64,000 nt of DNA, taken from Zygnema circumcarinatum SAG 698-1b (lineage: Eukaryota > Plantae > Zygnematophyceae). This document shows positions 12,132 through 59,419 of the stretch, one piece after another. The notes beneath the pieces were generated by a model. That model was not told the DNA's origin, made no database searches, and saw only the letters and a list, made by a program, of their open reading frames with translations. How positions within the stretch are numbered: the stretch's first letter is position 1; each line of letters opens with the position of its first letter. The translations under genes were made by a program, and so were the position numbers. Location: the NCBI GenBank assembly GCA_037447605.1, contig CM074808.1:4211674-4275673 (forward strand). The letters are read 5' to 3'.

Positions 12132-15100
12132 ATGGATAGGAGTGTTTCCGTGAGGGGGAAGAAGAAGGATAGAGTACCCCTGAGGAAGCTCGCGCAGATT
12201 GCCTCAGTGGCTACTGGAGTGCAGTTCGGATGGGCATTGCAGCTGTCGCTACTCACTCCCTATGTGCAGGAACTTGGGATTCCGCATGCATGGGCATCTT
12301 TGATATGGCTTTGCGGCCCAATATCCGGCATGTTAGTTCAGGATGATTGTGAAAACTTCGTAACACGTGCACATTCTCCACTTATCGAGAGCCCGTCCTT
12401 CTGGTAATTTTTGTTTCCTTGATGGAGTCTGCATGCAAATCTTCCCTTCTTCGGCGCCTTAATCATTTATTCACTTATGCGATACGACTTAAAGTTTACA
12501 TCCTGAGCATAACCCACACAATGCTATGGTCTAATCTGCCCTTGTTTCCTGACACTAGCGTACCGCATAGTGCGCAAACGTGATGTTTGTTTATTCGAAC
12601 ATCAGCCTGCATAGTACGTATTATCATCGATATGTACATATCATATACATACCTTGGGCATTGATGAGCGTCCTGAACTCATCAACGTCTTAAATGCATT
12701 GCCGCATGGAGTGTCTGCTAGTTGCCCTTTGGGAGAGGGGGGGGGAAGCTTTCCTGAGCGCTCTCTTAAAAATCAAGTCGTTTGCGATTGACAAGTCATG
12801 AGGAATTTATCATCGTGTTTGGTTACTGCAGCCATTGTGGGACATTACATGATATCTGTAAACAAGCCAGTATGGACGCCGGAGGCCGTTCATTGTCGTT
12901 GGGGCCATTCTTGTTTCCCTAGGCGTCGTGGTTATTGGGTTTTCTGCAGATATTGGCAGTCTTCTCGGTGACAGAAAAGAGTTCAAGCCTTGGGCCATAG
13001 GCATATTCATCCTAGGTATCTGGTAACTCAAAGTACAGAAGTTCTGGACTCTTCGTTTCCAGCCAAAAAATGGCAAATTGACAACTTCTTTAATGCTCAT
13101 TCTGCTGCGCCTGATAATTCTGACTCTTCCGTGTCTTAATATCGATGGGGCCATTTTAATTTTATACCATTCATAAAATTCCGGCATTCGTTGCTTGCTG
13201 TGTAAATGATAAATTCATCGTTTCAGGATTAGAGTGTTACGGCTGTTTTGGTCGCTGTTCCTGAAAAACGTCTGTACTTTTTCTTGTTTCGCGTGCTGTT
13301 CTCCACTAAGAAAGCATGCACTGGCCTTTGCGTTCAGAGATTACCTCACTTCTTTTCTGCTCACCAATTGCAGCATTTCGTAATTTGCAAACAACACCCT
13401 TCAGGGCCTTGTCGTGCCTCCTTGCAGACTTCACGGGTGTGTTTCACTTCACTTTTATATCCGAGACAGAACCTTGTATCGAAATCATTCATGCCGATTT
13501 AGGAACTCCTTTTGCCAATTCCTCCGTTGCAAGGGCGGCCTGCAGGTCTAATGGGCCGTCATTTTTGCAGGCATTCAGCATGCTCAGATAGCCAGTGAAC
13601 TTCGGTTCTGGCTCTTGCATCTGAAGCCCAGCAGAGCTTTAGTGAGCAAACATTTTTTCCGTCTATTTAGATGGAAACAATTGACTCTCTAGCACCCACC
13701 CTTTCATTGACATTTGTTGGATGAGCTTTTGATTGATCTGTGTAACCTCATGTTGGGAGCATAAGGCTGTACAATAGCCAAAAACCTACGAAAGAAGTGC
13801 CGATCGTGTTTTGTGCTTCCTCCAAAATCATTTGCTGTCCATGGGGGAAAAAAAAAATCAATCGCTTCCTTCGGTGCGAAAAAGTTTCCTTTCAGGTTCC
13901 GACAATCATTACAGAAGTTGTGCATGGCATAATTACTTGCTGTCGGCATGTCTTTTGATTGCTCCTGCTGCAGGTAGAGATGCCAAGCGTACCCGCAGGG
14001 CCAATGCATTCTTTTCATTTTTTATGGCCGTTGGAAACATTCTCGGATTTGCAACTGGTTCTTTTGACGGCTGGTATAAAATTTTTCCGTTCACTCTAAC
14101 AAGCGGATGTGATGAAGCTTGTGCAAACCTGAAAACGGCGTTTTTGATCGCGGTCATTCTCTTGCTTGCCACAACTTTTCTAAGTGTCACTGCGGCTAAG
14201 GAGAAGCCGTGGGTTCCTGACTCGCAGCTACCAACCAGGTGACCCCTCCTTACTGTTTGGGTATCTTCACTTTTGTTTCGCTTGGCGCTCTTCGTGTGGG
14301 CTCACGCGCCTGCAAGGTCGAACTGTAATGCTAGTCAGTGCTTGTCGGATTTCTTTGGTTCGGGAGCAGCTAGTGCCGCGGCACTTCAAGGGAGAAAACA
14401 TAGTTGTGACACTCTTTTGTTGAGTTCCAACTGACATTCCTGATATTCTGTGCTTCTGGCTGTTTGTGTCTCAGTACTACGCCACTTTTAAGTGATCACA
14501 AGTCAAGAACAGAAAGAAGGGCTCAGATTAGTGGTGCGATACCAACGACCGTCAGATAGGGTGACGTGCAATCTGCGCATAGTACTAGCACAGCCACGGA
14601 TGCTCTCGTGACTGTGGGGGGTACTGCTGATGGTTCTCAAACTGTTGAAAATGACGAAGACGATGAAGATGAAGAGGAGGAGGAGATGGAAGAAGAGGAA
14701 ACCAAATGGGTGCTGTCAGAGCTCCTTTCAGCTTTGAAGGACCTTCCAGCTCCAATGTGGTATGTCCTTCTTGTAACAGGCCTTACGTGGCTTTCTTGGT
14801 TCCCTTTCCTTCTGTTCGATACGGATTGGATGGGTCGTGAATTGTACAGAGGCTCTGCAGACGGAACACAGCCGGAAGTAAAAAGGTACTACAGTGGGGT
14901 CCATACGGGAGCATTAGGCCTCATGTTCAACTCCGTGATTTTGGGCCTTTCCTCCTTGGTCGTGGAGCCTCTTTGTCGAAGACTGGGCTCTCGTACTGTA
15001 TGGGCGGTCTCCAATTTCATCATCTCCGGCTGTCTCCTGGGAACTTACTTCGTGGAACCTGGAGTGACGTCTCACCTGGTCCATTGCCTACCCGCACTGG

Positions 15101-15545
15101 TTGGCCATTGGTATTTTTGCCATTCTCGGCTTTCCTCTTGCGGTGAGTTCTTGTTTCTCTAGACCGTTCAACAACAGGTAATGACAAATATCTTGCTAGC
15201 GCGGTTTTTGGGAGTTTTTTGAAATGGTTTGAAGATGGACTTTTCCACTTCAATGTTCATAAGCCTTCACAACTTGAAAGAAAACGAGGCATTTTAGTGA
15301 GCTTGGTATGCTTTTGGCTCTTACTACTTATTTCGCATGATTGTATGCTGGTTTCGAAACATATTTCTTTGCGAAGCCTAAGTTAAATTAGTAGTTCCGC
15401 ACCTCTTGAAGCTAACATAGACCTGCGACTTCTAGAATGCAGAAGCTTACTGCTCGCTTTTTCTGCTTTGAGGGAATGACAGGTGACTTACAGTGTGCCC
15501 TATTCACTCACTGCGACCTTCACGAGCTTCTAAGCGGTGGTCAAG
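12132..15545 (+). CDS. SUT: Sucrose/H+ symporter (SUT/SUC, GPH family), C-terminus lost at gap; frameshifts and one in-frame stop in this sequence
   Basis: [42 protein letters not shown] (12132-12341); [11 protein letters not shown] (~12870); ANNTLQGPCRALLAD (~13390, indels); [25 protein letters not shown] (13974-14238); [17 protein letters not shown] and [10 protein letters not shown] (14475-15142); [14 protein letters not shown] (15483-15545). Confidence 0.92.
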
Positions 15546-16006
15546 GTGAGATCATGCTACGTCCGCCGGACTCAGTGTAGCCTTCAGTTTGTTTCAATTT
15601 CTGCGACCAGGGCAGGATGTAAGGAGGATTAAAAGAGTGGGTTCTAGGCCCAAAGCCATGCCAAAAAAGCATCCATCCACAAGCTAATGNNNNNNNNNNN
15701 NNNNNNNNNNNNNNNNNNNNNNNNNNNNNNNNNNNNNNNNNNNNNNNNNNNNNNNNNNNNNNNNNNNNNNNNNNNNNNNNNNNNNNNNNAAAGAATCATC
15801 AACATGCCGTGATTTTGAAAAATGACTGTCTTCAAATTGTCTTCAAATTGGACTCTCTAGTTCTGAATTGCTTGATTTGATGTCTGTTGTTAGATATTTC
15901 ACAACTTTGACTCTGCACTATTCCACGAGGTGCTGGATCAACCATTGCAATGGTTGCGAATTATTGATTCGCGACCAACCACTGCTAATGGTTCCAACCA
16001 TTGGAT

Positions 16007-19000
16007 TCAATGGTTGCAAACCATCGATGTTCGCGAATGGCTGCCCCAAGAAAATTGACGTGGAGGTGGCACGGGAGGAAAGACTTCATGTGCATCAGGA
16101 TAATATCTATTTACAAAAGTTGTCTGCAACATAAAACAAAAAACAAAAAATGTTAGGATTAAGGTTGGCGGCAGGACATTGCCGTTCAAATTGTGCTACT
16201 TTCCTTTTTAGGCAACCCTAAAGTAAAAAAACAAAATGCAAGTTAATCATCCTCCTACCCTCCTTAATCGACACACTCTTACCTTCATCCATTTTAATGG
16301 AGTTTCTGGTGGCTCCTTCGGATAAAACTTGTAAACTTTCATGTCTTCCAAAGACTTGCGCTCTGCCTCTGACATTGAATCAATTTCTTGCTGTTTTTTT
16401 GCACGAGCCTGCCATGATGCGACAAACTCACTCTCTTTGTTAACAAGTTAACAAATTATATGTAATAAAAAACAAACATTCATATTAACATTTATATGAT
16501 CCCCTACTCTTTGGCATGTCTAAGCCTTTCCAGTTGAACTGCATCTTCTTATGTAACGCAAACAAGGGTCAAGCGTCTACTAACAAGTTTAGTGACTGGC
16601 GAAGTGACTGCCCAAAGGTTATCATTCAAGATTTCTTTAGAGCCAAAAAGCATGCAAACAGCTTATTGATGACTCTAGCAACTCTAAAGGTAGACAAAAA
16701 AACCCTAAAAACCCTAAAAACCCTAAAACCCCTAAAGTCCCTAAAAACCCTACAACAGTTTATGTCTCAACTCACCTCCCTGATCGTGGCCTTTGCCGCA
16801 TCCGCTTCCGCTTTGCAGTGCGCCTGGCCCATAAATTCAAAGCAATGCAAATATCACACATCCAATCAGGAAATCAAATGTGCCCAAAGATTCTAAAACA
16901 CATAAACCAAAAACAATGACAGTGAGGAGTGTCAGTTGCTCCCTCGACAGTGGCTGATCGATAGTTCCTGCCTTCCGTCTCCACTGCCAGGTTGGTCACA
17001 GGTTGGTGACTTACCCAAAAATTGTCGTGTTCTGAATCGGGCAGGTCGGTTTCAGCAGAAACCCTGGCCAAAAAATCCTGCAAGTAGAATGAAACAGCCC
17101 GAACCATAAACAGTTTACTTAGGATCACATTGAAAGCAGCATTTTCGTTTGGAGATCAAGGCGTCACGAAGTGAAGGCCACGTACATCTTTGTCGTCATC
17201 ATATTTCCAATCATATTCTGTGACAATCTGCCCACCCAGCTCTCCACACCCCAAATCATATAATCACATATAAGACACTCCCCTTAAGCCATCCCTTGTC
17301 TGAATTCCAATTGGCCTGCAAGGATAGGGCTAATAGTCACGGTGGACTCAACGTTCACCCCACTTGATCCCTTCATTATGAAAGCTTATTGTGTTTTCTA
17401 TGTCTAGCCTCGGATCGAGTGCAAAGGACGCACCGGTGCCTTTCCCTCGTCATATTCAAACAGAATCTGGACGGTAGAGACTGCTTCTGGGAGATTCCCT
17501 TCTTTCTCTGGGTTGAAAATATCTGTGAAGGAACACCCAATAGTTCAGTATCTAACCTGGCAGCAACCAAATGAACAGGAATATCTGCGCACATGCGGCT
17601 GATTTCAAGAATCAAGACAGGAAAGCGCACAAGAACCTGCAAGACAGTTGAATAGGAAGGAATAACACTCACATGGAACCACATATTCAAATTTTTTAAG
17701 ATCCTCCTCTGTCATCCTTCTCAAACTTTCCCTGCATAATGCACTTGGAAGTACGTGTTAGCAACTCACTCGACAATACATGATTTAGGCGTGAATCTGG
17801 AAAATAACGGAGAAGCATCAAGACAAATGCAACAACAGTTTCCGTAGTACCTCCGTTGTTTGCACTTCATAAAATGAATTTTGACATCAGAACGACCTTT
17901 TCTCCTGCACACAAAACCAAACAACGAAAAGCAAAAAATAGAGTTGAGAAACTCAGCAATGTTCAATCACATGAGCATACAACTGAACACGTAAAATTAA
18001 GAATATCGCAAGTATTATTACTTGTCGAAGTACGGTATCCAGGAGAACTTTAGTTCGTCCATATGTATAATTTCTTCCCCCCTCGTGACGGACGTCACCC
18101 CGAGCTTGTAAGACGGGGGCAGTGGAGAAACCACCTGCATCCATAACACAAGTCTTAATCAGATTAGTCCATGACCTCTACAATCGCATTTGTGAACAAA
18201 GGAATCAAAGCTCTAAGGGCTAAGGGATGAGGTTTAGCAAGATAAAGGCCAGCAACTTACAGCGACTATCACCGGGATCACATAAACTTTCCCCTCTAGA
18301 TCGTGTTGGCCTGCATTTAACAAACAATTCAACATTGACTTTTCAATGCGGAGAAACAAATTCAGAGCATGGCAATTTGTTCCTACTTTAAGTTGATGGT
18401 CCTTCAACTGTAAAACAAACCTTTACCTTCAGTTGATCCAAATACCCAACACGTTCTCCCGTGGAGAACCGCACCAGGCTTGAATGCTTCCTGCAAAAGT
18501 TTTTGAAGCATCTTGATTAGTACAATGAATAACTAAAAAATGAATAAGGTGAGCAAACTAATGTATTCAACTACTACGTATCATTGCTAAAATGTACAAG
18601 AGAAAAGTAGAGCGTTATGAAAGATGAGAGATTTACCTCAAAGGAAGAAAAATCCCAGTTTTCTTTATGCATCCGATCACATATAGCCCACTGTAAACGA
18701 GCAAGAGGTTATTAATAGCCAAAATTTTGCAAAAGTAAAAAAAAAAAAACCAACTGGCTGCTTAAAACAAGAAAACTGAAAAAAAACACCTTACCTCAGT
18801 CCCAACCAGAAATATCTCCTTCCAAAGGTTTTCCTGCGAACGGAGACATGTCTCTACCAACTTTGGCTCATCTTTCGCTATCTCTGTAGGCGAAGACTCA
18901 GTTTCTTCTTTTGCTTCAGCATTTGCTCTCATTTCGGCTCCTTCTCCCTTGCCTTCCACTTCGCCCTCATTCTCCTCTGCCTTATCTTCCTCATCCAAAC

Positions 19001-20630
19001 CTTTCTCAGATGGACGATATTCCTCTATAAGGCGTCGGATGATACCCTTCTCCTTCTGCAGATCACCGGACAAGGAATCCCCTGAAAAGATATAAAAAAA
19101 AAAAAAACACTAGATTTATGGTTAGATTCAATCCATTGCAGTGATAATGTTCAATGATAATAACCCACAGGCATGGCTGCCTGCAGCCTTTCCACTAGAA
19201 CTTTTAAAGGAAACCCGGGAAGGAAAGAAGTCGTCTTACCAACAAAGTCTATGTCATCCTCATCAGTAATCTGCACGTTACAATGACAAATTAAGAGGAC
19301 AGTACGAGCACCCTTGCAGGAAAATCAGCAGTACCTACACCAATAAAACATACATGCCCGGCAACCATTAGCAAAAGCATCATTAGCAAAAGCATACATG
19401 ATCAAGGTCGACGCACCTTTTTCGGGCTACAACTGGCCACTAAGACCTTGACTTGTGTCCTCAAATTCTGCTCTGCAGCGGGAGGTTTTTTCTTGCCTGC
19501 ATCGCAATACTGTTGTGATCAGTATCCCTCAATCATCCAAAGAATGGTTCCAAAACTGTAAAACATGCAAAATCATTTGTTTTACCTGTCCTCCTTCGCA
19601 CACTTGGATTTCCTGAAATCCTCATCCACTTGGTCGGAGTGGACTCCTCGTCATCTTCTTCTTCTTCTCCTTCATCATTGTGCCTCCGCTTGGCAGTTGG
19701 ATTAGACGGCTACAATTCCAGCATGAAAAAAAAAAAATGAATAGAAATTGTGCTAACCACAACAAACAACTCGCACACTTTCCTACAGGAAGGCAGGCAA
19801 GGCATTCTTTGGCGGCTTGCCCAAGCAACGCCAACGAACGTCCACAAACAATTCATCTAGGCAAAAACACCAGACCACCTGTGGGCCATCTCTTCACTGC
19901 TATGGCCAACGGCGGACTCCTGCTAAGGTGAAGAACCCTTACCTTGGCTTGCACTGCCTTTGCTGGAGGTGTGCATTTCTTGGAGTCCAGCAGCATAACA
20001 CACAGGAAGTTTCTGACAGTTCAGCAGTTGCAAGAGTAGCAGCCTCACCTTTTGACAAACAAAAGAGTTGCAGATACAGAAAAATGCTAAACAGCTGATT
20101 TTGAAGATTCAATTAAGTGACGGACCTGGGCAATTGTTGACGGGGGCCCCAGCCTCAGCAAGAGAGAACACACACGCTCAATCTGCTCCTCCTGCAAACA
20201 CCGAACAAACAAACAGAGAAAAGCATCATCAGGAAATGTGCACTGCGCAAACTACAGAAGCACTAAATAGCAATAACAATAATAATAATAGCAGAATACA
20301 TACCGTTTTTCCATCAGCGTTGGGAAGATCAAGGAGCTCTAGGAGCTGCTGGAAATTTTCCTCTGTGTAACGTTCGAGTTTTTCCTTCAGTTTCGCTTTT
20401 TTCACCTCCTCACCCTCCTCGCCCTTCTCCTTTTCCGCTTCCTTCTCCTCTCCGAACTTTTTCTCTTCCTCCTTTTCAGCCTTTTCCTCCATGCCTTCCG
20501 CTCCTGTCTCCTTCTCCTCTCCTGACTTTTTCCCTCCCTCCCCTACACCTCCCTTAATCGTTGTCTCCACATTTTCTGGAGCATCTGCCACTTCTGAATG
20601 GTTACTCGATATACCCCATTTATATGGCAT
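16007..20630 (-). CDS. HIT4: HEAT-INTOLERANT 4 (HIT4)-family protein with N-terminal DEK-like (SAP-like and DEK_C-like) domains
   Basis: Successive GT-AG exons spell ENLWKEIFLVGTE / WAICDRMHKENWDFSSFE / EAFKPGAVLHGRTCWVFGSTE / SPLPPSYKLGVTSV..IPY / KCKQRR / LKKFEYVVP / EYDW / MKVYKFYP / TFVNRYYPDAHEV, colinear with recalled Arabidopsis HIT4. Upstream exons give KKAKLKEKLERYTEENFQQLLELLDLP (20304-~20600) and a DEK_C-like helix bundle. Start codon uncertain. Confidence 0.85.
16701..16752 (-). repeat. Interstitial telomere-like tract inside a HIT4 intron
   Basis: aaccctaaaaaccctaaaaaccctaaaacccctaaagtccctaaaaacccta, lying between exons 16776-16823 and ~16285-16428. Confidence 0.85.
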
Positions 20631-23051
20631 TGGATCCAACAAAAAGCACAACAAAACTGCACGTTTGACGTGGCAACGTCAGACTCGTGGCAACTATACC
20701 CTATTTTCATGAAATTCTTGTTTTAGCGTGGTACGTTTGTGCTGTGATTAATTTGACCAATACCATATCCTTTTCGGGCGTTGTCAACCGAATGATTCCA
20801 AATCATAGTTAGTCCACATTCAACCTCCAAAAAACCAGAGTTTAAAAGTGTACCGTGAAGAGGTCAGCGATCTTCCACGAAGCTTGGCGCACCAGAAATG
20901 AAGGACGTCAAAGACGTACAGAACGCAAATGATCGACGAACAAATCTATTTATGAAGCAACACCTAATGAGGCTGTTGTAACAATGGATAATGAAACCGC
21001 TACCCTTTATCGAAGTACAAAGGGTACAAACTGCAAAATAAACGGTACGTTTGAGCTGTTATTCTGTTTGTCAACACCATAACCGTTTCGAGAGTTGTAA
21101 ACTGAACCATTTGAAATGGACTTTCGATTCTGCTTTTCGGTTAACAATGCCCGAAACGGCATGTCGGTAGCAGTTGTGTCACCAACATGCCGTCATTGAA
21201 ACGTCGTCGACGTGACCGTATCGGCACGAAACGGCTTTATTTTGTTTTTTTTTTTTTTTGGGACGGAGATGTGGTCATTTTTTGTTTTTGTTTTTTTGTA
21301 ATCGCGTGAGTGTGATTGTTTGTTGACAATTCCCGGAAACGTCAGGTTTGTATCGGTATCTGATCAGAAATAGAATCGAACCGCTAACGCCTCGTGACAA
21401 TTTACGAGAGAATAGACGGCAACGTTTGTCCACATGTCAATGTCTTATTGTAATGATAACCCGTCACCTCATTTTGAATAACTCGCCACCCTGATATTTT
21501 TTATTAGTAAAATGAAATATCGGCTTGCCGAATCGCAATCACGAAAGGATCCGTCCGCCACGAGATCGTTCGCGGGTGTGCAATCTTCACACGTGCGATA
21601 TGTCTCCGCCGTCGATTTTTTCGCACATTTGCGCACGGCAAATCTAGGTTCGATCTGCTATCGGGCTCGGTTCCAGCGAATATGGTACGTGCCGACGTGT
21701 CGCATCCAAGCGGCCTGGCCAGTGCGGGGCCGTTCGTCAATCGGCACGAGATCCCCGTAAAATTATCAGTTGGACCGGCCAGCCGGCGGCGGCTCATTAG
21801 CGTCGACTGAAACAATCACTCACCATCTGCCACATGTCCTTCTGTATGACGTGACACATTTTGATTTGCTGATGATCTTAATGTAACGTATTTCGAACGA
21901 ACGGAAAAAAACGTTTCGCGACAGATCTCGTGGCCGACAGATCTTCCGCTGCGAGCTGATTCGGGCAGGTCAATATTTTATTTTTGTGAACTTATATACC
22001 CCCAATGAGGACCAACGTAAAAGAGCGTGTCCCTATATTGACAAAACAAGCTCTTACGGTTTACCAACACAAACCGGTACAACCGGTATTTGTTAAGTCA
22101 CATCAAATAGCACTGTCGTAACAATGGATTCGGCAACGGCTACCCTTTGTCAAACTACAAATACAGCTGTTACGTATCTGTCAAACACGACACGCTACGT
22201 TAAAGCGGTTCTTAATTTGACCAACACGATGACCGTTTCGGGCGTTGTCAACCGAACCATTTCAAATCTTGCGTGTCCATAGTTTGACAACACAAGCTGT
22301 TACGGTTTGCCAACACATACCGGTACAAACATCCCGTTTCAAGCATTGTCAACCGACAATCACAATCCTGCGATTACGAAAATCGTACAGAAAAAGACCC
22401 ACATCCTCGTCCACAATGATTGTCCAAATACAGCCGTTTCGTGCCAGTACGGTGACCACGACGATTGACCTACCGATTGCCCTCACGTTGTAAATCCTTT
22501 GACCGTCAACACTGTCGCCATTTTCCGGCTGCCGTCCGTACAGCCGTCCGTTCAGATTCGCAGACCCACGCATGGGTGGTCCACATGGCACTGCTTGATT
22601 CGTAGCCGACATTCTGAGGCGACTCCACTGACGCTTCTTTCCGCCGCTTCGTGCACCACCGTTGACTTCAATCAACTTTACCAACACACACCGGTACGAA
22701 CATGCCGTTTCCGGCATTGTCACCTCATAATCACAATCCCGCGATTTGCGCGAACAAAAAATGACGGAAAAGGAAAGTTACGAAAGTACTCCTCTATACC
22801 AGGGTCGCGATATCACCGGAGTACTCGTTCTAGTGTCAAACATACTGACGTTTGTTACGTTTCGTTTCGGTGGTATCAAACAGAACAAATATTGACGGAA
22901 AAGGAAAGTTACGAAAGTCAACAGGCCAATCGATCGGCCGCGCGTCGTATGCGCGTATCGCATGAACGACGTCGCCGGTGTCGCATGCGTGCGTCGTGAA
23001 TTTTGCACCGTCGATCAGCCTCTATTGATTAATGATGACGTCAGCCATCTC
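20605..23051. repeat. Non-coding mosaic repeat with internal duplications (probable non-autonomous transposon remnant)
   Basis: Blocks at ~20745 and ~22212 (ttaatttgaccaa..tttcgggcgttgtcaaccgaa), ~20975 and ~22115 (gtaacaatgga..gctaccctt), a triplicated ccaacacanaccggtac, and a 25-bp direct repeat at ~22765/22895; no credible ORF. Confidence 0.6.
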
Positions 23052-23061
23052 NNNNNNNNNN

Positions 23062-23570
23062 GAAGGGGAGAATGGTGGAAAAATGAAGGATGAAAACGAT
23101 GAAGAAGAAACATCGAGAGTCGAAAGAGCAGAATGGTGGAGGGGGGAAGGAAAAAAAGGAAGGGAAGTAACATGGAGTGTGATGAAGGGGAGAATGGTGG
23201 AGAAAGAAGGACGAAGAGAAGGAGGAAGGAATTAGATTGTAGTGAAAAGGAAAATGGTGGAAGGAAGAAGGAAGAAACAGAAGGAGATAGGAACATGGAG
23301 TGTGGTGAAAGGGAGAATGGTGGAAGTGAGAAGGAAGAAAAAGGGGGAGGAAGGAAAATGGAGTGTGTAAAGAGAAGAATGGTGGAAGGGAGAAGGAAGA
23401 AAGAGGAGAGGTTGTTGATGAAAGATGAAGGCTACTAACTAACAAGTCAGCCCGTCAGTCTGTCAGTTTGTCGGCCAGTCTGTGAGTCCGTCTGTCAGTC
23501 AGTCGTCTGTCTGTCGGCTAGTCTGTGAGTCCGTCTGTGAGTCAGTCTGTCTGTTTGTCGGCCAGTCTGT
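23062..23570. repeat. Purine-rich degenerate minisatellite followed by a (GTCT)-type microsatellite
   Basis: Repeated gaaggggagaatggtgga-like unit (~5 copies) to ~23430, then gtct/gtca repeats at 23445-23570. Confidence 0.75.
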
Positions 23571-23977
23571 GTAATGAGAGGTCCGGGGTCTGGCCTGACG
23601 GACCAGCGAGGAGGCGCGGGAGGTAGAGGGAGAGAGAGATAGAAGCCGGTTTCCGGATTGAATGCCGTTGCATTCGCCCCCGCCCCTATACGCTTCCCCC
23701 GTCGAACCCTCTACCAGCATGAGGGACCGGAAGCACGGCCCACCACTAGCGAGACGCCGCGTGGCTGGTGTAGCCCGTGGCGGATCGCCACGTGGAGTAT
23801 ATGTCAGCGCTCGACCCAGAGCCGTCGCGCAAGGTTCGGCGTCGTCGCATATACGACGCGCGCATACGACGCGCATATGCGACACGCGACCGACACCCGC
23901 GCGCGGCGCCCGCCGAAAGGCGGCGCGCGTCCGTACGCGCGCGGTCCTAGTATGTCGGTCCCCCGGCNNNNNNNNNN

Positions 23978-24944
23978 TATAAGTTCACGAGCTCTTGGCA
24001 ATGGGTCAAATTGCCTTCTTTCTCCCACGTGCTATGTTCAACCCCATAGCCCAGCCACTTCACGAGATATTCGTGGCGGGAGGTCTGACCCCTTTTCACG
24101 GTTCGGTGGGTCTGAATGGACTCGACCTCGTACTCGAGGTCGCCTTCAATATCCACTGGGGGTGGAGGTGGCTGGATCCTCCCGTCACTCAAGTAGCGCT
24201 TTAGCAGACTCACATGAAACACCGGATGTATCTTCATGTGAGCCGGTAAAGCCAGCTTGTAAGCGACTTCGCCAATGCGGCTCAAGACCTTGAATGGCCC
24301 GATGAACCGTGGCCACAACTTACGGGTTCCCCCTCGAAGCTCTCGCCCAAACTGCCAGAGCCAAGAAGACGTCCGCTTCCCGTGCCGAACGCTGAAGCCG
24401 AGTCCGCTTATGACAAGATAGATCTTCGTCGGGATCGTAAGCCGCCAAAGAAGGTCGCCTTTGCACGCCGCATACAGCTTCTGACATGAGTTTTAACAAA
24501 AGATCTAACGGCGGGTGGGTGATCCCCCCCAGCTCCTCTCAAGCCCCAAGGGTCATCGTCCCGGTGGATGCCTTCATTCCACGAGGACGGCGGCTGATCC
24601 CTTGGCTGCAGGCGATTTAGAGGATGCTGACCAAAATTCAGAAAGAAGGGGGTCGTACCGATTGATTCCTGATGAGCATTGTTGATGGCGTACTCCGCCA
24701 ATGGGAGCAAGGTATCCCACTCATCCGGCGTGGGTCCCACGTAATGCCGCAGGAAATCTTCCACAATGCGGTTGACCCTCTCCGTTTGGCCGTCAGTTTG
24801 CGGATGAAAAGCTGTGCTGAGCGCTTGCTTGGTGCCCACGATTTTCAGAATTTCAGTCTAAAAGTGACCGGTAAATCGGGGATCTCTGTCAGAAACAATG
24901 GTGGACTGAAAACCATGCAAGCTCCACACCTTGTCAACGTAGAT
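23978..24944 (-). mobile_element. Chromovirus element A, 3' half (integrase core C-half + chromodomain)
   Basis: YVDKVW..TAFHPQTDGQTERVNR, WPRFIGPF (GPF/Y motif), YEVESIQTHR..YLVKWLGYGVEHSTWE (chromodomain); frameshifted; cut by gap at 23968. Confidence 0.9.
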
Positions 24945-25705
24945 GTAACAGCTGAGATCTGCCTCTTCAGCCTACGCGGAATCACACACCAGCACTCAGC
25001 AAAACAGAGTTCAGATCGAGAGGGATTCAGAGAGAGAGAGAGAGAGCTTCAGAGGGTCGCGCAGCCCTGGGCAGGGGTGCAACCGAATGCCGGTACGTTG
25101 GTTGGGTGACGACAGTCACCCACGCCCCTTTACGCTTCCGTCAACCTCCTAACAAAGATGGAGGATCGAAGTGTGGTCGCCCAATGGCATCGCCACGTGA
25201 AACCTCTCTCAATTCACCGGGTCGCAGGTGTGGCTAACGCATTAACGCCATCATCGCGAGATTCTCTGCGCAGGTGGCGCCGCTACAAGGCCAGCGACGC
25301 GGCGCCAGACATCGTAACGGTGCCGGATCCTACGCTACGCGGGTTCGACAGCCACCGTCCGGCATCAACGTACCCGTGAATTCAGCCTTACTCCAACGGG
25401 CGACTCCCTGGGATCCGGCCGCCGCCCGAAAGATTCACCGCGGACCGATTGGGTCCCTGCGTGGTGCCTGCAATCCCCAATCCTCCCCTAAGCCGAGGTG
25501 AGGGGACCTTTGGTCGCAGCCGTGGGGCGACCGCGACTATGCGTGGTGTGCCCCCTAATGTGCAGGAACCAGTTCTACGGTTCAACCTAGACCTCCGTGT
25601 GGTCTCATAGGGTATCCGGCTCCCAACCGCTGGGGTAGTATCGCATTGATGGAAACATAAAGCCACCGGCCCTATAACCCTTCCGGGGTGATCATGCTTT
25701 TCACA
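24945..25705 (-). repeat. 3' LTR of element B
   Basis: Minus strand reads TGTGAAAAG...TGTTACA; contains an (AG)n tract; homologous to 31557-32294. Confidence 0.8.
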
Positions 25706-25741
25706 TTGGCTTCCCCTGCGGAGAATGCGTGAACGCCTCGC

Positions 25742-27196
25742 TCACGCGGTGGGGTAAGAAGGCAACAGAAGTTTCAACGGGCACGCTGGCCGTAATCCCC
25801 TACGTGATAACCGGGAGGGCTCAGCGATAATCCCGGTCAAGTCCCTTTCCGAGTTGCGCGGGGACGGCTCAGGAACCCCCCGTGCCGCCCTCGCCCGCTC
25901 TCCTGCGGCCTGCGCCTCCCAGTACAAGTTGATGAGCTCCTGGCAATTGGTTAAGTTGCCCTCGCTCTGCCATGTGCTATGCTCAACCCCATAGCCCAAC
26001 CACTTCACGAGGTATTCGTGACGGGAAGATCGACCCTTTCTCACAATACGGTGGGCTTGAATGGTTTCAACTTCATACTCAAGTTCACCTTCAAGTTCCA
26101 CTGGTGGGGGAGGTGGTTGGATCCTCCCATCGCTACGGTAGACCTTTAGCAAACCCACATGAAAGACCGGATGCACCTTCACGTGGGATGGTAAATCCAA
26201 CCTGTAAGCGACATCATTGATTCGCTTCACGACCTTAAAAGGTCCGATGAAACGGGGCCACAGCTTACGTGTTCCGCCATAAGCTTTGAGTCTCAAGTTC
26301 GCCGTACTTAGCAACACCTCGTCGCCTTCGTTGAAGGTGAGTTGGGTACGGTGACGGTCAGCATAGGCCTTTTGTCGCGACTGGGCCGCTAGCAGGGTCT
26401 GCCGTGCCCTCTGCAGCGCCTCAGACATTAGTCGGACAAAAGATCTGACTGCGGGAGGTTGAGTCCCATCAGTCCCTCTCAGCTTCCAAGGATCGGGGTT
26501 TCTGTGGACGCCCATGTTCCACGGATCAGGGGGCTGATCCCTTGGTTGCAGGGGATTTAGGGGATGCTGCCCAAAGTTCAGGAAGAAAGGGGTGGTACCA
26601 ATGGACTCCTGGAAAGCATTATTGATGGCGTACTCTGCCACTGGGAGCAGTTCATCCCACCCATCCGGGGTGGGTCCCACATAATGCCGGAGGTAATCCT
26701 CCAGGATCCTGTTCACCCGTTCCGTCTGGCCATCGGTTTGCGGGTGGAAAGCTGTACTCAACGCCTGCTTGGTCCCAACGATTTTGAGCACTTCCGTCCA
26801 AAAATGGCCGGTGAATCGTGGATCACGGTCAGACACAATTTCTGACTGAAGACCATGCTGGCTCCACACTTTGTCAACATACAACCGTGCAATCTCGTCG
26901 GCCCCAGCGGTCTTAGTAGTTGGTGCAAAATGCACCATCTTGCTGAGCCGATCGACAAAGACGAGGATGGAGTCATGCCCCCGAGGTGTCACAGGAAGAT
27001 CTGTGATCAAGTCCATACCCACACTATCCCATTTCCGAAAAGGAGGTGTGAGGGGTTGCAGCTGGCCAGGGATCCCGCCAGCGCGGGGTTTGTTTCGTTG
27101 ACAAGTTGGACAAGCGAGTACATACGCTTTCACATCCCTCGAGAGTCCAAGCCACCAGAACTCTCGAGCAGTGCCTCGCAAATGGTTTTGGGGCAA
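25742..27196 (-). CDS. Integrase with GPF/Y motif and chromodomain (element B), uninterrupted ORF
   Basis: ORF 484 aa: CPTCQ zinc-binding part, MDLITDLP, SDRDPRFT, QTDGQTERVN, PRFIGPF, YEVETIQAHR..YLVKWLGY. Confidence 0.95.
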   Translation of the reverse strand: MPQNHLRGTAREFWWLGLSRDVKAYVLACPTCQRNKPRAGGIPGQLQPLTPPFRKWDSVGMDLITDLPVTPRGHDSILVFVDRLSKMVHFAPTTKTAGADEIARLYVDKVWSQHGLQSEIVSDRDPRFTGHFWTEVLKIVGTKQALSTAFHPQTDGQTERVNRILEDYLRHYVGPTPDGWDELLPVAEYAINNAFQESIGTTPFFLNFGQHPLNPLQPRDQPPDPWNMGVHRNPDPWKLRGTDGTQPPAVRSFVRLMSEALQRARQTLLAAQSRQKAYADRHRTQLTFNEGDEVLLSTANLRLKAYGGTRKLWPRFIGPFKVVKRINDVAYRLDLPSHVKVHPVFHVGLLKVYRSDGRIQPPPPPVELEGELEYEVETIQAHRIVRKGRSSRHEYLVKWLGYGVEHSTWQSEGNLTNCQELINLYWEAQAAGERARAARGVPEPSPRNSERDLTGIIAEPSRLSRRGLRPACPLKLLLPSYPTA

Positions 27197-43478: not shown

Positions 43479-45067
43479 AGAGAGAAGAGAGGAGAGAGAA
43501 GAGAGAAGAGAGACGAGAGAAGAGAGACGAGAGAAGAGAGAAGAGAGAAGAAAAGAGAGAAGAGAGAAGAGAGAAGCGAGAAGAGAGAAGAGGGAAAAGA
43601 GAAGAGAGGAGAGAAGAGAGAAGAGAGAAGAGAGAAGATAGAAGAGAGACGAGATAGGAGAAGAGAGATGAGAGAATGGATAAGAGAGAAGAGAGGGGAG
43701 AGAAGAAAGAAGAGAGAAGAGAGAAGAGAGAAGAGAGGAGAGAAGAGAGCCGAGAGAAGAGAGAAGAGAGAAGAGAGAAGAGAGAAGAGAGAAGAGAGAA
43801 GAGAGAAGAGAGAAGAGAAGAGAGACGTGAGAAGAGAGAAGAGAGAAGAGAGAAGTGAGAAGGGAGAAGAGAGAAGAGAGATGAGAGAAGCGAGAAGAGA
43901 AAACAGAGTAGAGATTAGAGATAAGAGAGAAGAGAGGAGAGGAGAGAAGAGAGAAGAGAGAAGAGAGGAGAGAGAAGGAGAGAGAAGAGAGAAGAGAAGA
44001 AAGATGACAAAAGAGAGAAGAGAGGAGAGAAGAGAGAAGAGAGACGAGAGAAGAGAGAAGAGAGAAGAGAGAAGAGAGATGAGAGAAGAGAGGAGAGAGA
44101 AGAGAGAAGAGAGGAGAGAGAAGAGAGAAGAGAGAAGAGAGAAGAGAGGAGAGAAAAGAGAGAAGAGAGAAGAGAGAAGAGAGAAGAGAGAAGAGAGAAG
44201 AGAGAAGAGAGAGAAGAGAGAAGAGAGAAGAGAGAAGAGAGAAGAGGGAAGAGAGAAGAGAGGAGAGAAGAGAGAAAGAGAGACGAGAGAAGAGAGAAGA
44301 GAGAAGAGAGAAGTGAAGAGAGACGTGAGAAGAGAGAAGAGAGAAGAGAGAAGAGAGAAAAGAGGAGAGAAGAGAGCCGAGAGAAGAGAGAAGAGAGAAG
44401 AGAGAAGAGAGAAAAGAGGAGAGAAGAGAGCCGAGAGAAGAGAGAAGAGAGAAGAGAGAAGAGAGACGAGAAGAGAGACGAGAGAAGAGAAGAGAGAAGA
44501 GAGAAGAGAGAAGAGAGAAGAGAGAAGAGAGAACACAAGAGAGACGTGAGAAGAGAGAAGAGAGAAGAGAGAAGAGAGAAGGGAGAAGAGAGAAGAGAGA
44601 AGAGAGAAGAGAGGAGAGAAGAGAGCCGAGAGAAGAGAGCAGAGAGAAGAGAGAAGAGAGAAGAGAGAAGATAGAAGAGAGAAGAGAGAAGAGAGAAGAT
44701 AAAAGAGAGAAGAGAGAAGAGAGAAGAGAGACGAGAGAAAAGAGGAGACAAGAGAGAAGAGAGAAGAGAAGAAAGACGAGAGAAGAGAGAAGAGTTGAGA
44801 GAAAAGAGAAGAATGAAGAGAGAAGAGAGAAAAGAAGAGAGAAGAGAAAGAGAGAAGAGAGAAGAGAGACGAGAGAAGAGAGACGAGATAGGAGAAGAGA
44901 GATGAGAGAATGGATAAGAGAGAAGAGAGGAGAGAGAAGAAAGAAGAGAGAAGAGAGAATAGAGAAGAGAGGAGAGAAGAGAGCCGAGAGAAGAGAGAAG
45001 AGAGAAGAGAGAAGAGAGAAGAGAGAAGAGAGAGAGAGAAGAGAGAAGAGAGAAGAGAGAAGAGAGA

Positions 45068-45099
<32 letters not shown>

Positions 45100-47808
45100 A
45101 GAGAGAAGAGAGAAGAGAGAAGAGAGAAGAGAGAAGAGAGAGAGAAGAGAGAATAGAGAGAGAAGAGAGAAGAGAGAAGAGAGACGAGAGAAGAGAGAAG
45201 AGAGAAGAGAGAAGAGAGAAGAGAGAAGAGAAGAGAGACGTGAGAAGAGAGAAGAGAGAAGAGAGAAGAGAGAAGAGAGAAGAGAGAAGTGAGAAGGGAG
45301 AAGAGAGAAGAGAGAAGAGAGAAGAGAGGAGAGAAGAGAGCCGAGAGAAGAGAGAAGAGAGAAGAGAGAAGAGAGAAGAGAGAAGAGAGAAGAGAGAAGA
45401 GAGAAGAGAGAAGAGAAGAGAGAAGAGAGAAGAGAGAAGAGAGAAGAGAGAAGAGAGAAGGGAGAAGAGAGAAGAGAGAAGACAAAAGAGAGAAGAGAGA
45501 AGAGAGAAGAGAGGAGAGAAGAGAGAAGAGAGAAGAGAGAAGAGAGAAGAGAGAAGAGAGAAGAGAGAGAAGAGAGAGAGAGAGAGACGAGACGAAAGAG
45601 AGAAGAGAGAAGAGAGAAGAGAGAAGAGAGAAGAGAGAAGAGAGCAGAGAGAAGAGTTGAGAGAAAAGAGAAGAAAGAAGAGAGAAGAGAGAAGAGTTGA
45701 GAGAAAAGAGAAGAATGAAGAGAGAAGAGAGAAAAGAAGAGAGAAGAGAAAGAGAGAAGAGAGAAGAGAGACGAGAGAAGAGCGACGAGAGAAGAGAGAA
45801 GAAAGAAGAGAGAAGAGAGAAGAGAGAAGAGAAGAGAGACGAGAGAAGAGAGAAGAGAGAAGAGAGAAGAGAGAAGAGAGGAGAGAGAAGAGAGAAGAGA
45901 GAAGAGAGAAGGGAGAAGAGAGAAGAGAGAAGAGAGAAGAGAGAAGAGAGAAGAGAGAAGAGAGGAGAGAAGAGAGAAGAGAGACGAGAGAAGAGAGAAG
46001 AGAGAATAGAGGAGAGAAGAGAGAAGAGAGAAGAGAGACGAGAGAAGAGAGAAGAGAGAAGAGAGAAGAGAGAAGAGAGAAGAGAGAAGAGAGAAGAGAG
46101 AAGAGAGAAGAGAGAAGAGAGAAGAATGAGAGAGAGAGAGAAGAGAAAAGAGAGAAAGAGAGAAGAGAGAAGAGAGAAAGAGAGAAAGAGAGAGAGAAGA
46201 GAGAAGAGAGAAGAGAGAAAGAGAGAAGAGAGAGAAGAGAGAAAGAGAGAAGAGAGAAGAGAGAAGAGAGAAAGAGAGAGAGAAGAGAGAAGAAAGAAGA
46301 GAAGAGAGAAGAGAATAGAGAGAGAGATAGAGAAGAGAGAGAGAGAGAAGAGAGAAGAGAGAAGAGAGAAGAGAGAAGAGAGAAGAGAGAAGAGAAAAGA
46401 GAGAAGAGAGAAGAGAGAAGAGAGAAGAGAGACAAGAGCAGAGAGAAGAGAGCAGAGAGAAGAGAGAAGAGAGAAGAGAGAGAAGAGAGAAGAGAGAAGG
46501 GAGAAGAGAGAAGAGAGAAGAGAGAAGAGAGAAGAGAGCAGAGAGAAGAGAGAAGAGAGAAGAGAGAAGAGAGAAGAGAGAAGAGAGAAGATAGAAGAGA
46601 GAAGAGAGAAGAGAGAAGACAAAAGAGAGAAGAGAGAAGAGAGAAGAGAGAAGAGAGAAAAGAGGAGACAAGAGAGAAGAGAGAAGAGAAGAAAGACGAG
46701 AGAAGAGAGAAGAGTTGAGAGAAAAGAGAAGAAAGAAGTGTGAAGAGAGAAAAGAAGAGAGAAGAGAGAAGAGAGAAGAGAGAAGAGAGAAGAGAGAAGA
46801 GAGAAGAGAGACGAGATAGGAGAAGAGAGATGAGAGAATGGATAAGAGAGAAGAGAGGGGAGAGAAGAAAGAAGAGAGAAGAGAGAAGAGAGAAGAGAGG
46901 AGAGAAGAGAGCCGAAGAGAAGAGAGAAGAGAGAAGAGAGAAGAGAGAAGAGAGAAGAGAGAAGAGAGAAGAGAAGAGAGACGTGAGAAGAGAGAAGAGA
47001 GAAGAGAGAAGTGAGAAGGGAGAAGAGAGAAGAGAGATGAGAGAAGAGAGAAGAGAGAAGAGAGAATAGAGAAGAGAGGAGAGAAGAGAGCCGAGAGAAG
47101 AGAGACGAGAGAAGAGAGAAGAGAGAAGAGAGAGAAAGAGAGAAGAGAGAAGAGAGAAGAGAGAAGAGAGAAGAGAGAAGAGAGAAGAGAGAAGAGAGAA
47201 GAGAGAAGAGAGAAGAGAGAAGAGAGACGAGATAGGAGAAGAGAGATGAGAGAATGGATAAGAGAGAAGAGAGGGGAGAGAAGAAAGACGAGAGAAGAGA
47301 GAAGAGAGAAGAGAGGAGAGAAGAGAGCCAAGAGAAGAGAGAAGAGAGAAGAGAGAAGAGAGAAGAGAGAACAGAGAAGAGAGAAGAGAGAGAGAGACGT
47401 GAGAAGAGAGAAGAGAGAAGGGAGAAGAGAGAAGAGAGATGAGAGAAGCGAGAAGAGAAAACAGAGTAGAGATTAGAGATAAGAGAGAAGAGAGGAGAGG
47501 AGAGAAGAGAGAAGAGAGAAGAGAGAAGAGAGAAGAGAGAAGAGAGAAGAGAGAAGAGAGAAGAGAGAAGAGAGAAGAGAGAAGAGAGAAGAGAGAAGAG
47601 AGAAGAGAGATGAGAGAAGAGAGGAGAGAGAAGAGAGAAGAGAGGAGAGAGAAGAGAGAAGAGAGAAGAGAGAAGAGAGAAGAGAGAAGAGAGAAGAGAG
47701 AAGAGAGACGAGAGAAGAGAGAAGAGAGAAGAGAAGAGAGAAGAGAAGAGAGAAGAGAGAAGAGAGAAGAGAGAAGAGGGAAGAGAGAAGAGAGGAGAGA
47801 AGAGAGAG
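43479..47808 (+). repeat. 4.3-kb polypurine array, basic unit AGAGAAG, with higher-order landmarks
   Basis: Near-pure A/G strand; the landmark gagacgagataggagaagagagatgagagaatggataag recurs at ~43650, 44880, 46810, 47225. Confidence 0.95.
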
Positions 47809-48125
47809 CTGCGCGGGGCCACGCCACCACAAGTCGCGTGGACGCACTTTCGGCGAGAGCACGGCGCGCGCCGCTGCGCCACGCGCAGCTCTGGATGCAC
47901 GGACGCTCACGAAGGGCGCTGCGAGCCGCAAGTTCAGGACGGGCGCGTGAACCTACTATTTTGACGGGCTTCGAATGCGCACCACGGAGGGGACCGGGTC
48001 CGCAGACGAGCCGGCTGCTGACGCACGGCGGCCGCTGAACGCGCGCAGCTGGCTCGCCTGCTCACTGTACCCGCCCAGCTTGGGCGCCCACACGCTGGTC
48101 CACAGAGGATCTGTCTATCAGTGTG

Positions 48126-58500: not shown

Positions 58501-59371
58501 TCTCTCTTCTTGCTTCTCTTCTCTCTTCTCTCCTCTCTCCTCTCTCCTCTCTTCTCTCTTCTCTCTTCTATCTTCTCTCTTCTCTTCTCTCTTCTCTCTT
58601 CTCTCTTCTCTTCTCTCTTCTCTCTTCTATCTTCTCTCTTCTCTCTTCTCTCCTCTCTTCTCTCTTCTCTCTTCTCTCTTCTCTCTTCTCACTTCTCTCT
58701 TTTCTCTTCTCTCTTCTCTCTTCTCTCTTCTCTCCTCTCTCGTCTCTCTTCTCTCTTCTCTTCTCTCTTCTCTTCTCTCTTCTCTCTTATCTCGTCTCTC
58801 TTCTCTCTTCTCTCTTCTCTCTTCTCTTCTCTCTTCTCTCTTCTCTCTTCTCTCCTCTCTTCTCTTCTCTCTTCTCTCTTCTCTTCTCTTTTCTCTCTTC
58901 TCTCTTCTCTCTTTTCTCTTCTCTCTTCTCTCTCCTCTCTTCTCTTCTCTCTTCTCTCTTCTCTCTTCTCTCTTCTCTCTTCTCTCTTCTCTCTTCTCTC
59001 TTCTCTCTTCTCTCTTCTCTCTTCTCTCTTCTCTTCTCTCTTCTCTCTTCTCTCTTCTCTCTTCTCTCTTCTCTCTTCTCTCTTCTCTCTTCTCGTCTCT
59101 CTTCTCTTCTCTCTTCTCTCCTCTCGTCTCTCTTATCTCTTCTCTCTTCTCTCTTCTCTCTTCTCTCTTTTCTCTTATCTCGTCTCTCTTCTCTTTTCTC
59201 TCTTCTCTCTTCTCTCTTCTGTCTTCTCTCTTCTCTCCTCTCTCTTCTCTCTTCTCTCTTCTCTCCTCTCTTCTCTCTCTCCTCTTCTCTCCTCTCTCTT
59301 CTCTCTTATACTCTTCTCTCTTCTCTCTTCTCTCTTCTCTCTTCTCTCTTCTCTCTTCTCTCTTCTCTCTT
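55513..59371 (-). repeat. 3.9-kb polypyrimidine (plus strand) array, unit CTTCTCT, opposite orientation to the 43.5-47.8 kb array
   Basis: Near-pure C/T plus strand; the landmark ctccactctcttctctccactctc recurs at ~56520, 57680, 58330. Confidence 0.95.
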
Positions 59372-59419
59372 CGAATCCGGTTGACCCTATAAAATGCGCC
59401 CGTCACGTCTAAGGGTGGA

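Follow-up and report, generated by a model that had tools for sequence, protein, structure and literature searches.

A probable lineage-specific HIT4 variant with a front extension of possible DEK origin in Zygnema circumcarinatum SAG 698-1b

HIT4 (HEAT INTOLERANT 4, Arabidopsis At5g10010, UniProt A2RVJ8) is required for heat-induced chromocentre decondensation. A core of about 290–300 residues is common to the family and to the algal gene described here, and the two are colinear exon by exon. In front of this core, known members carry either a short basic tail or a long acidic disordered tail. Residues 1–143 of Arabidopsis HIT4 are predicted to be disordered (pLDDT below 50), and the front tails of six moss-like HIT4 cDNA contigs measure about 30–60 residues. 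The literature searched names no domains in HIT4, and a comparison of the core with solved structures gave no clear match.

DEK proteins are the second group of interest. Their domains are arranged as a pseudo-SAP/SAP region, a linker with a nuclear localization signal (NLS), and the DEK-C three-helix bundle (PMC13088671). There are also proteins in which a DEK_C-type bundle precedes an unrelated body, as is proposed here for the algal gene. These are the SWIB/Tri1/Uaf30-type proteins and the fungal class V/VII chitin synthases (PMC12653383). They differ from the algal gene in that their DEK_C is recognised by Pfam, they are without a SAP box, and none is joined to HIT4. No paper linking HIT4 with DEK or with Zygnema was found in the literature searched.

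The window is the whole stretch of 64,000 nt of Zygnema circumcarinatum DNA that was analysed. Reading and translation of its minus strand gave a gene of 18 GT-AG exons in a single frame, from an ATG at 20492 to a TGA at 16007, for a total of 551 codons. The model's 17 introns, each of them GT-AG, span 89–416 nt, and no internal stop occurs in the 18 exons. About 245 residues, in five or six extra exons with five in-phase junctions, appear to precede the HIT4 core. The features are as follows.

20612–20634, minus strand: TATA-like ccatataaatgg upstream of exon 1, from reading of the sequence only
20304–20492, minus strand: proposed exon 1; ATG at 20492, an E/K-rich stretch and a helix ending in ...LLELLDLPNADGKT
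20126–20191, minus strand: proposed exon 2 of 22 codons, in phase 0 on either side (EEQIERV...LGPPS), continuing exon 1
19943–20049, minus strand: possible additional or alternative exon within intron 2; its donor, at 19943, is good
19586–19709, minus strand: proposed exon 4; an acidic run between the basic patches KRRH and VRRR, resembling a linker and an NLS
19417–19496, minus strand: exon 5; KKKPP and after it an amphipathic helix, the first third of the DEK_C-like stretch
19240–19270, minus strand: exon 6; 31 nt, ITDEDDIDFV, the middle third of the DEK_C-like stretch
18834–19081, minus strand: 5' part of exon 7; the final third of the DEK_C-like stretch (...DLQKEKGIIRRLIEEY), followed by an acidic linker with DEPKLVE at its end
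18795–18833, minus strand: 3' part of exon 7; equivalent of the HIT4 micro-exon, 39 nt, E-D/N-LWKEIF-x-VGTE
16007–18690, minus strand: HIT4 core; twelve exons, the last containing the TGA
18690–18637, 18490–18427, 18310–18261, 18134–18022, 17904–17851 and 17731–17673, minus strand: first to sixth exons of the HIT4 core
17522–17434, 17227–17186, 17077–17015, 16823–16776, 16408–16283 and 16123–16007, minus strand: seventh to twelfth exons of the HIT4 core

Upstream of exon 1 the frame continues without a stop as far as an in-frame ATG at 20630, an alternative start. Between the TATA-like element and the ATG at 20492 there are two out-of-frame ATGs, with a 13-codon upstream open reading frame. 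Joining the candidate exon at 20049–19943 to the 19709 acceptor was rejected because the frame shifts into a stop. Retrotransposons are present on both flanks of the locus. A second copy of the front exons was not found in the 64,000-nt window.

From their sequence, the exons from 18833 to 16007 are identified as those of a true HIT4 homologue. A tblastn search of the window with Arabidopsis HIT4 gave matches at 18842–18795, 18134–18030, 16420–16079 and further exons, all in order, with E-values of 7e-7, 5e-5 and 3e-3 on successive HIT4 exons. The algal exons are colinear with the family alignments along the whole core, which extends between WK..F..GTEW and NRYYG.A. Alga and land plants have a common donor after GTE, and in land plants the preceding 39 nt form a micro-exon. 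Land-plant HIT4 has an intron before E-D/N-LWKE; in the Zygnema copy this intron has apparently been lost or is read through. A list of invariant and near-invariant HIT4 residues was derived from 146 sequences. The Zygnema copy keeps five of the six assessable invariant residues and 54 of the 77 assessable near-invariant ones, measured against a reference list that is mostly angiosperm and in which some fragment rows are misaligned. The family-invariant Q236 is replaced by T and the near-invariant G428 by P.

These two replacements at otherwise fixed positions, and the retrotransposons on either side, would fit a decaying HIT4 duplicate that gained extra front exons and is drifting, with little or no expression and no function of its own. 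The 551-codon frame is nevertheless intact across 17 canonical introns, and the 54 near-invariant residues were kept although the list is dominated by angiosperms. Decay is thus an improbable account of the gene. It appears instead that Zygnema circumcarinatum probably possesses a lineage-specific HIT4 variant.

On the sequences compared, HIT4 proteins in general do not have the front extension: it is absent from roughly 170 others that were examined. An HMMER search with a 38-residue core exon gave nine matches, which led to the family entry P0004; the protein of the Zygnema gene was not among them. A profile word search with the family alignment gave 779 matches, and the 120 matches listed were all from angiosperms. 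The precomputed Pfam domains of HIT4 relatives included no DEK_C or SAP among the 43 and the 120 matches listed, and hmmscan found neither in 26 diverse HIT4 members at E<=1. The preliminary description had named a general occurrence of this architecture among HIT4 orthologues as one observation that would speak against its reading; that occurrence was not seen in the relatives examined. A metagenome scan with the HIT4 alignment recovered 54 loci, all 50–60% identical and none close to Zygnema, and among these 54 there were no relatives of the front exons. The Zygnema copy also departs from the disordered front of the family in having non-repetitive helical stretches. Its architecture differs in this respect, and its membership by the core is unaffected. 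The usual short basic or long acidic tail is replaced by some 245 additional residues that include two helical modules.

The coding nature of the front was examined through splice sites, base composition and open frames. A splice-site matrix was trained on the introns of the HIT4 core only, and 130 donors and 179 acceptors were ranked with it. The front donors were placed at ranks 3 (exon 4), 4 (exon 5, AAG/gtgcgt), 7 (exon 2), 11 (exon 1, ACG/gtatgt) and 12 out of 130. Three of the five front acceptors were at ranks 1 (exon 2), 4 (exon 6) and 5 (exon 7, strong and with a poly-T tract) out of 179. The other two are weak, at ranks 26 and 57, the latter being the tag/C acceptor of exon 4. The proposed front exons have a T content of 12–24%, except for the 31-nt exon 6 with 35%, and the proposed introns have 33–50%. 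Exon 1 is at 12%, against 37% in confirmed introns, and the 5' part of exon 7 is exon-like at 17.7%. In the confirmed HIT4 core the values are 25% for exons and 37% for introns. The contrast in the front matches that of the core, which counts for the front exons as coding.

Dynamic programming was used to search for spliced paths that enter the HIT4 frame without a stop, with 300 segment-wise, composition-matched shuffles as the control. The best path in the window is 1044 nt long. The shuffles had a median of 15 nt and a maximum of 804 nt; none of the 300 attained 1044 nt and two attained 738 nt, the length of the front in the proposed model. This comparison supports coding continuity of the front with HIT4, as judged from open frames. 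All three exons of the DEK-C-like stretch occur in every path found, and exon 5 is in all paths that preserve the open reading frame. Alternative in-frame paths run through 20043–19943 and 19683–19586. Because two acceptors are weak and there are several such paths, the exact model of the front is uncertain. The protein-library, word and metagenome searches recovered no transcript-derived protein or contig for the Zygnema gene. The 551-codon model may correspond to an expressed mRNA.

Exon 7 is where the front meets HIT4. As had been described, the exons at 19496–19417, 19270–19240 and 19081–18795 are GT-AG, are in phase and encode the DEK_C-like peptide, and the third of them enters the HIT4 start without a stop. 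This 95-residue junction exon has one open frame into ...ENLWKEIFLVGTE and terminates at a GTAAGG donor. In alignment, the DEPKLVE end of its linker falls opposite EP-E-Y-F-E, with which land-plant HIT4 tails end. Relatives of the junction exon were not found among 5.8 billion proteins in a search restricted to lengths of 52–166 residues, nor in the JGI metagenomes.

The model could have falsely joined HIT4 to a small DEK-like gene next to it. Public annotations do contain fusions of HIT4 with neighbouring genes, such as Brassica entries with Pep1_7 or Fer2. At this locus, however, the third helix of the DEK-C-like stretch and the HIT4 start are in the same exon and the same open frame, with no intervening stop. 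The upstream gene would be without a terminal exon or stop unless an intron were retained, and no promoter-like gap separates the DEK-like part from HIT4. A false joining is therefore very improbable, the least probable of the explanations considered.

The preliminary description had gone further, in holding that mis-splicing could not explain a junction inside one exon. This is too strong. Directly upstream of 18833 is an acceptor-like tctccgttcgcag (18834/18833; 6.1 bits, rank 7 of 179), at the exact position of the land-plant HIT4 intron before E-D/N-LWKE. Exons 1, 2 and 5 have phase-0 donors, any of which could be spliced to 18833 in frame, with partial or complete loss of the DEK-C-like stretch; the site is thus within in-frame reach of three upstream donors.

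This site leads to a simpler account, in which the gene is an ordinary short-tailed HIT4. Translation would begin at an internal ATG of exon 7 or the 18833 acceptor would be used, the upstream exons would be 5' untranslated or alternative, and the SAP and DEK-C appearance would be due to chance in K/E-rich helical sequence. There is an in-frame ATG at about 18935, 34 codons before the ENLWKE start of the core, and a 34-codon tail would resemble in length the moss-like cDNA tails of about 35 residues. All searches with the front exons were blank, as this account would have it, and the acceptor-like site stands where land plants have their intron. Against it, such a tail has no basic KRK-type patch like those of other HIT4 tails. 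Upstream of 18833 there is also a strong acceptor with poly-T, at 19082, and no usable donor separates the two. The only GT dinucleotides within 19081–18834 are in a poor GAA/GTGGAA context or, in one case, 24 nt before 18833, too near for an intron. About 245 upstream codons are also open over five in-phase junctions, a length matched by two of 300 shuffles, and by none for the best path. An ordinary HIT4 is thus unlikely, though it is the strongest of the competing accounts.

The likeness of the front to DEK is a matter of order and spacing. The helix of exon 1 is read as the first half of a SAP-like motif, and exon 2 as its candidate second helix, with an intron interrupting the motif after GKT. 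Upstream of this helix, exon 1 is plain E/K-rich sequence, and the K/E-rich stretch ending in ...LLELLDLPNADGKT had been correctly assigned to this exon in the preliminary description. The individual motifs would resemble those of DEK, as judged by eye. The surface of DEK-C that faces DNA is expected to be basic, and in this respect the acidic middle helix of the DEK-C-like stretch (DEDDID) is unlike expectation. DEK proteins have the same order as the Zygnema front, with a SAP-box-like helix-turn-helix, an acidic/basic linker and a three-helix stretch of about 55 residues (PMC13088671). They differ in that single exons of the front gave no profile match, and in that the module here is at the front of another protein, which is not a DEK.

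Exon-wise hmmscan of eight single exons against Pfam (E<=10) gave only noise, with no row for DEK_C or SAP. The DEK_C-like stretch (PF08766) was scanned as pieces of 26, 10 and 21 residues against a domain of 55 residues. As the pieces cover only 10–26 of the 55 residues, this blank scan is not a refutation of DEK_C. For the SAP box (PF02037), neither exon 1 nor exon 2 gave a row, the motif being split by the intron. Sequence searches of the PDB with three front exons found nothing relevant, and Atlas gave no usable match. A crude pattern search of the three minus-strand frames at 20500–26000 did not find the pseudo-SAP half and histone-binding region of DEK. With no pseudo-SAP pattern within 5.5 kb upstream, the gene can contain no more than part of a DEK. 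The proposed DEK-HIT4 fusion is thus upheld for the HIT4 homology and the single frame. Its DEK and SAP identity found no row in the exon-wise Pfam and PDB searches, in which the pieces were short. The DEK link of the front is a lead, taken from sequence likeness. A Rosetta-stone reading, with DEK and HIT4 as cooperating partners, would be weakened if the join is a rearrangement confined to this lineage and no sign of an ancient functional tie.

The explanation that best accommodates these observations is a lineage-specific HIT4 paralogue that carries, where its tail would be, a front of about 245 residues likely derived from DEK, in one frame of 551 codons. The chances that it is right stand about evenly. 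The short disordered front tail of an ordinary HIT4 would have given way to a stretch rich in E and K, two helices spaced as in a SAP box, an NLS-like linker with acidic and basic parts, a stretch of three helices spaced as in DEK-C, and a second acidic linker that would merge into the HIT4 core. The order of SAP-like motif, linker and DEK-C-like stretch is that of the back two thirds of DEK, which makes an origin from a DEK-type gene the most likely one. The extension may have been acquired by exon capture from part of such a gene. The front modules would then fold as SAP and DEK-C and derive from DEK. The two small helical modules may directly bind DNA or nucleosomes and so hold the HIT4 core to chromatin, and import into the nucleus may be driven by the front's basic patches. 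Anchoring and import would both fall to the basic low-complexity tail in an ordinary HIT4.

If the front is untranslated or a chance pattern, the gene is merely another HIT4 paralogue. A more far-reaching possibility, and a tentative one, is that an alga closely related to the land plants expresses a complete HIT4 core fused to the DEK-C bundle and SAP box of DEK. If true, this would point to chromatin architecture of the DEK type being tied directly, in function, to the HIT4-driven loosening of heterochromatin under heat. DEK and HIT4 are separate genes in Arabidopsis, so the link can be tested there. A natural HIT4 with added DNA-binding modules would suggest that the core acts directly on chromatin and has to be tethered. 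DEK would become a candidate partner of HIT4 if the front modules derive from it.

The gene on the minus strand appears to encode a HIT4 protein with about 245 extra residues before the HIT4 core. Positions 21500-13500 were read on this strand, and the proposed exons were translated in all phases. The three exons of the preliminary description, 19496-19417, 19270-19240, and 19081-18795, are right as it gave them, with AG/GT borders and compatible phases (1, 0, 1). Exon 19081-18795 is indeed one open frame into the HIT4 start, passing from a third helical stretch through an acidic linker to ...ENLWKEIFLVGTE at a GTAAGG donor. The frame extends back to an ATG through the upstream exons 20492-20304, 20191-20126, and 19709-19586. 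An alternative in-frame ATG is present at 20630, and a TATA-like box is present at about 20625. Once its borders were corrected, the complete model came to 18 exons, separated by 17 GT-AG introns of 89-416 nt. The coding model is 1656 nt (551 codons and a TGA at 16009-16007) with no internal stops. The assembly has a gap, filled with N, at 15731-15790, about 220 nt past the HIT4 stop codon; it leaves the coding model untouched.

The downstream part is HIT4, as had been proposed. When the 38-residue exon 18134-18021 served as query, a large HMMER search returned only fragments and a single 380-residue relative, P0004; the window's own protein was absent from the representative library. A word search with P0004 led to Arabidopsis HIT4 (P0022, 434 aa) and to many angiosperm HIT4s, with one protein from a red alga and several environmental ones. 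By tblastn, P0022 matched the exons of the window in their proper order (E = 3e-3 at 18842-18795, 7e-7 at 18134-18030, and 5e-5 at 16420-16079), and the alignment of the exons follows the family core. The gene is probably a variant of the HIT4 family. A drifting duplicate is a less probable reading: the gene departs from the family at Q236 (T) and G428 (P), but of the positions that could be assessed it retains five of six invariant and 54 of 77 near-invariant ones.

Descriptions of HIT4, the preliminary one included, usually present it as a protein of land plants. The family is wider than this, because clear homologues (P0019, P0016, P0004, P0011, and P0048; E 1e-33 to 1e-62 against an environmental member) were obtained from a red alga (Agarophyton chilense), from a EukProt transcriptome, and from several contigs of environmental transcripts. 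In its helical back part (P0022 303-395; window exons 17077-16283), the core has a weak resemblance to CCT-like (PF2-like) domains of WNK kinases. Pfam CCTL2_WNK matched 11 of 26 HIT4 members (best E 6e-4), and Chd1 DNA-binding domain 1 weakly matched seven. VIA-align gave 5g3q_B (Z 6.5; 68 residues at rmsd 2.3 A) and 6fbk_A (Z 6.2), scores at which nothing more than a common arrangement may be shared. Foldseek of the whole core against the PDB gave no match.

The length of the upstream frame was compared with chance. Donor and acceptor matrices were trained on the 12 core introns only, and dynamic programming was used to maximise the length of a spliced path, free of stops, that starts at any ATG and enters the HIT4 frame at 18833. 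The longest path in the window is 1044 nt. Shuffling the sequence 300 times inside each of the proposed exon and intron segments gave paths with a median of 15 nt, a 95th percentile of 540 nt, and a maximum of 804 nt, and two of the 300 were at least as long as the proposed model (738 nt). Several alternative in-frame paths exist within 20300-19580, with the three DEK-C-like exons common to all of them.

The preliminary description held that mis-splicing could not explain the junction. In land-plant genomic loci (L041, L016, and L007), exon 1 ends ...EPEYFEDKRNL and is followed by an intron and a 39-nt micro-exon, EDLWKEIFPVGTE. The counterpart 39 nt in the alga are 18833-18795. The statement was too strong, because tctccgttcgcag, directly before 18833, reaches 6.1 bits on the acceptor matrix (rank 7 of 179), and exons 1, 2, and 5 have phase-0 donors, so that in-frame splicing to 18833 is possible. 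A single long exon is still favoured by several sequence features. The upstream acceptor at 19082 has a long poly-T tract. The GTs between 19081 and 18834 have poor donor context or lie 24 nt before 18833, too near for an intron. The T content of 19081-18834 is exon-like (17.7% vs 36.8% in confirmed introns), and its last residues, DEPKLVE, line up with EP-x-Y-F-E, where land-plant tails end. Two genes wrongly joined in one model would be another, unlikely explanation. A word search with the junction exon among proteins of 52-166 residues found no relative, and the JGI metagenomes held nothing close to the window gene. Transcript or expression evidence for the gene was absent from the protein library, the word search, and the JGI metagenomes.

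The front motifs around E-L-L-D-L and K-K-P-P presumably resemble DEK itself, which gives a lead. The front runs from a SAP-like helix-turn-helix through an acidic/basic linker to a three-helix stretch. The back two thirds of DEK have the same order of SAP, linker, and three helices (PMC13088671). This likeness is at the level of pattern. Exon-by-exon hmmscan against Pfam gave no DEK_C or SAP rows at E<=10. With phmmer against PDB sequences, exons 5 and 7 were blank and exon 1 gave low-complexity noise only; an Atlas search gave no usable match. These blanks are weak evidence, because the 55-residue DEK-C-like stretch is split by exons into 26 + 10 + 21 residues, the SAP-like motif is split after GKT, and the HMMER speed filters discard matches as short as single-exon pieces. 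A crude pattern search of 5.5 kb upstream found no pseudo-SAP half. DEK is an unproven label for the front, suggested by motif order.

The DEK-like front is not general among HIT4 proteins: the relatives examined are without DEK_C or SAP and have short or low-pLDDT tails. Neither domain was among the precomputed Pfam domains of the 43 P0004 word-search matches or the 120 profile-search matches listed, where only Pep1_7 and Fer2 occurred, in Brassica models. These Brassica entries (P0033, P0074, P0075, and P0104; 470-572 residues) seem to result from annotation read-through into adjacent genes. Likewise, hmmscan at E<=1 found neither DEK_C nor SAP in 26 diverse members. The tail in front of the WK..FPVGTEW motif is about 30-60 residues long in six cDNA-like metagenome contigs (L001-L006), which share 52-60% identity with Arabidopsis HIT4. 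AlphaFold2 of Arabidopsis HIT4 (146 aligned sequences) gave pLDDT <50 at residues 1-143 and about 85 in the core. A less probable reading is that the window gene is an ordinary short-tailed HIT4 with untranslated upstream exons; the 1044-nt path speaks against it.

Other features are present in the window:
12132-15162, plus strand, membrane transporter gene, convergent neighbour; one exon ORF matches MFS_1 (E 7e-5)
25742-27196, minus strand, chromovirus-type (Ty3/gypsy) integrase with zinc-binding, rve, SH3, and chromo domains
24408-24839, ORF related to the chromovirus-type integrase

The first exon of the transporter resembles a sucrose/H+ symporter. The HIT4 gene starts about 5 kb downstream of the integrase. 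Strand skew is extreme at 44001-48000 (GC skew +0.8 to +0.9, AT skew +0.9 to +0.96) and, with opposite sign, at 56001-60000. These are purine-only and pyrimidine-only arrays in inverted orientation.

The HIT4 core appears to have gained a front with two small putative DNA- or nucleosome-binding modules. The join is likely specific to the lineage, and the case for an ancient DEK-HIT4 partnership is weakened. The front would also bring basic import signals, and modules and signals together would tether the core to chromatin. Such tethering is the best reading; the open frame and the homology were observed, and folding, binding, and an origin from DEK are its putative parts.
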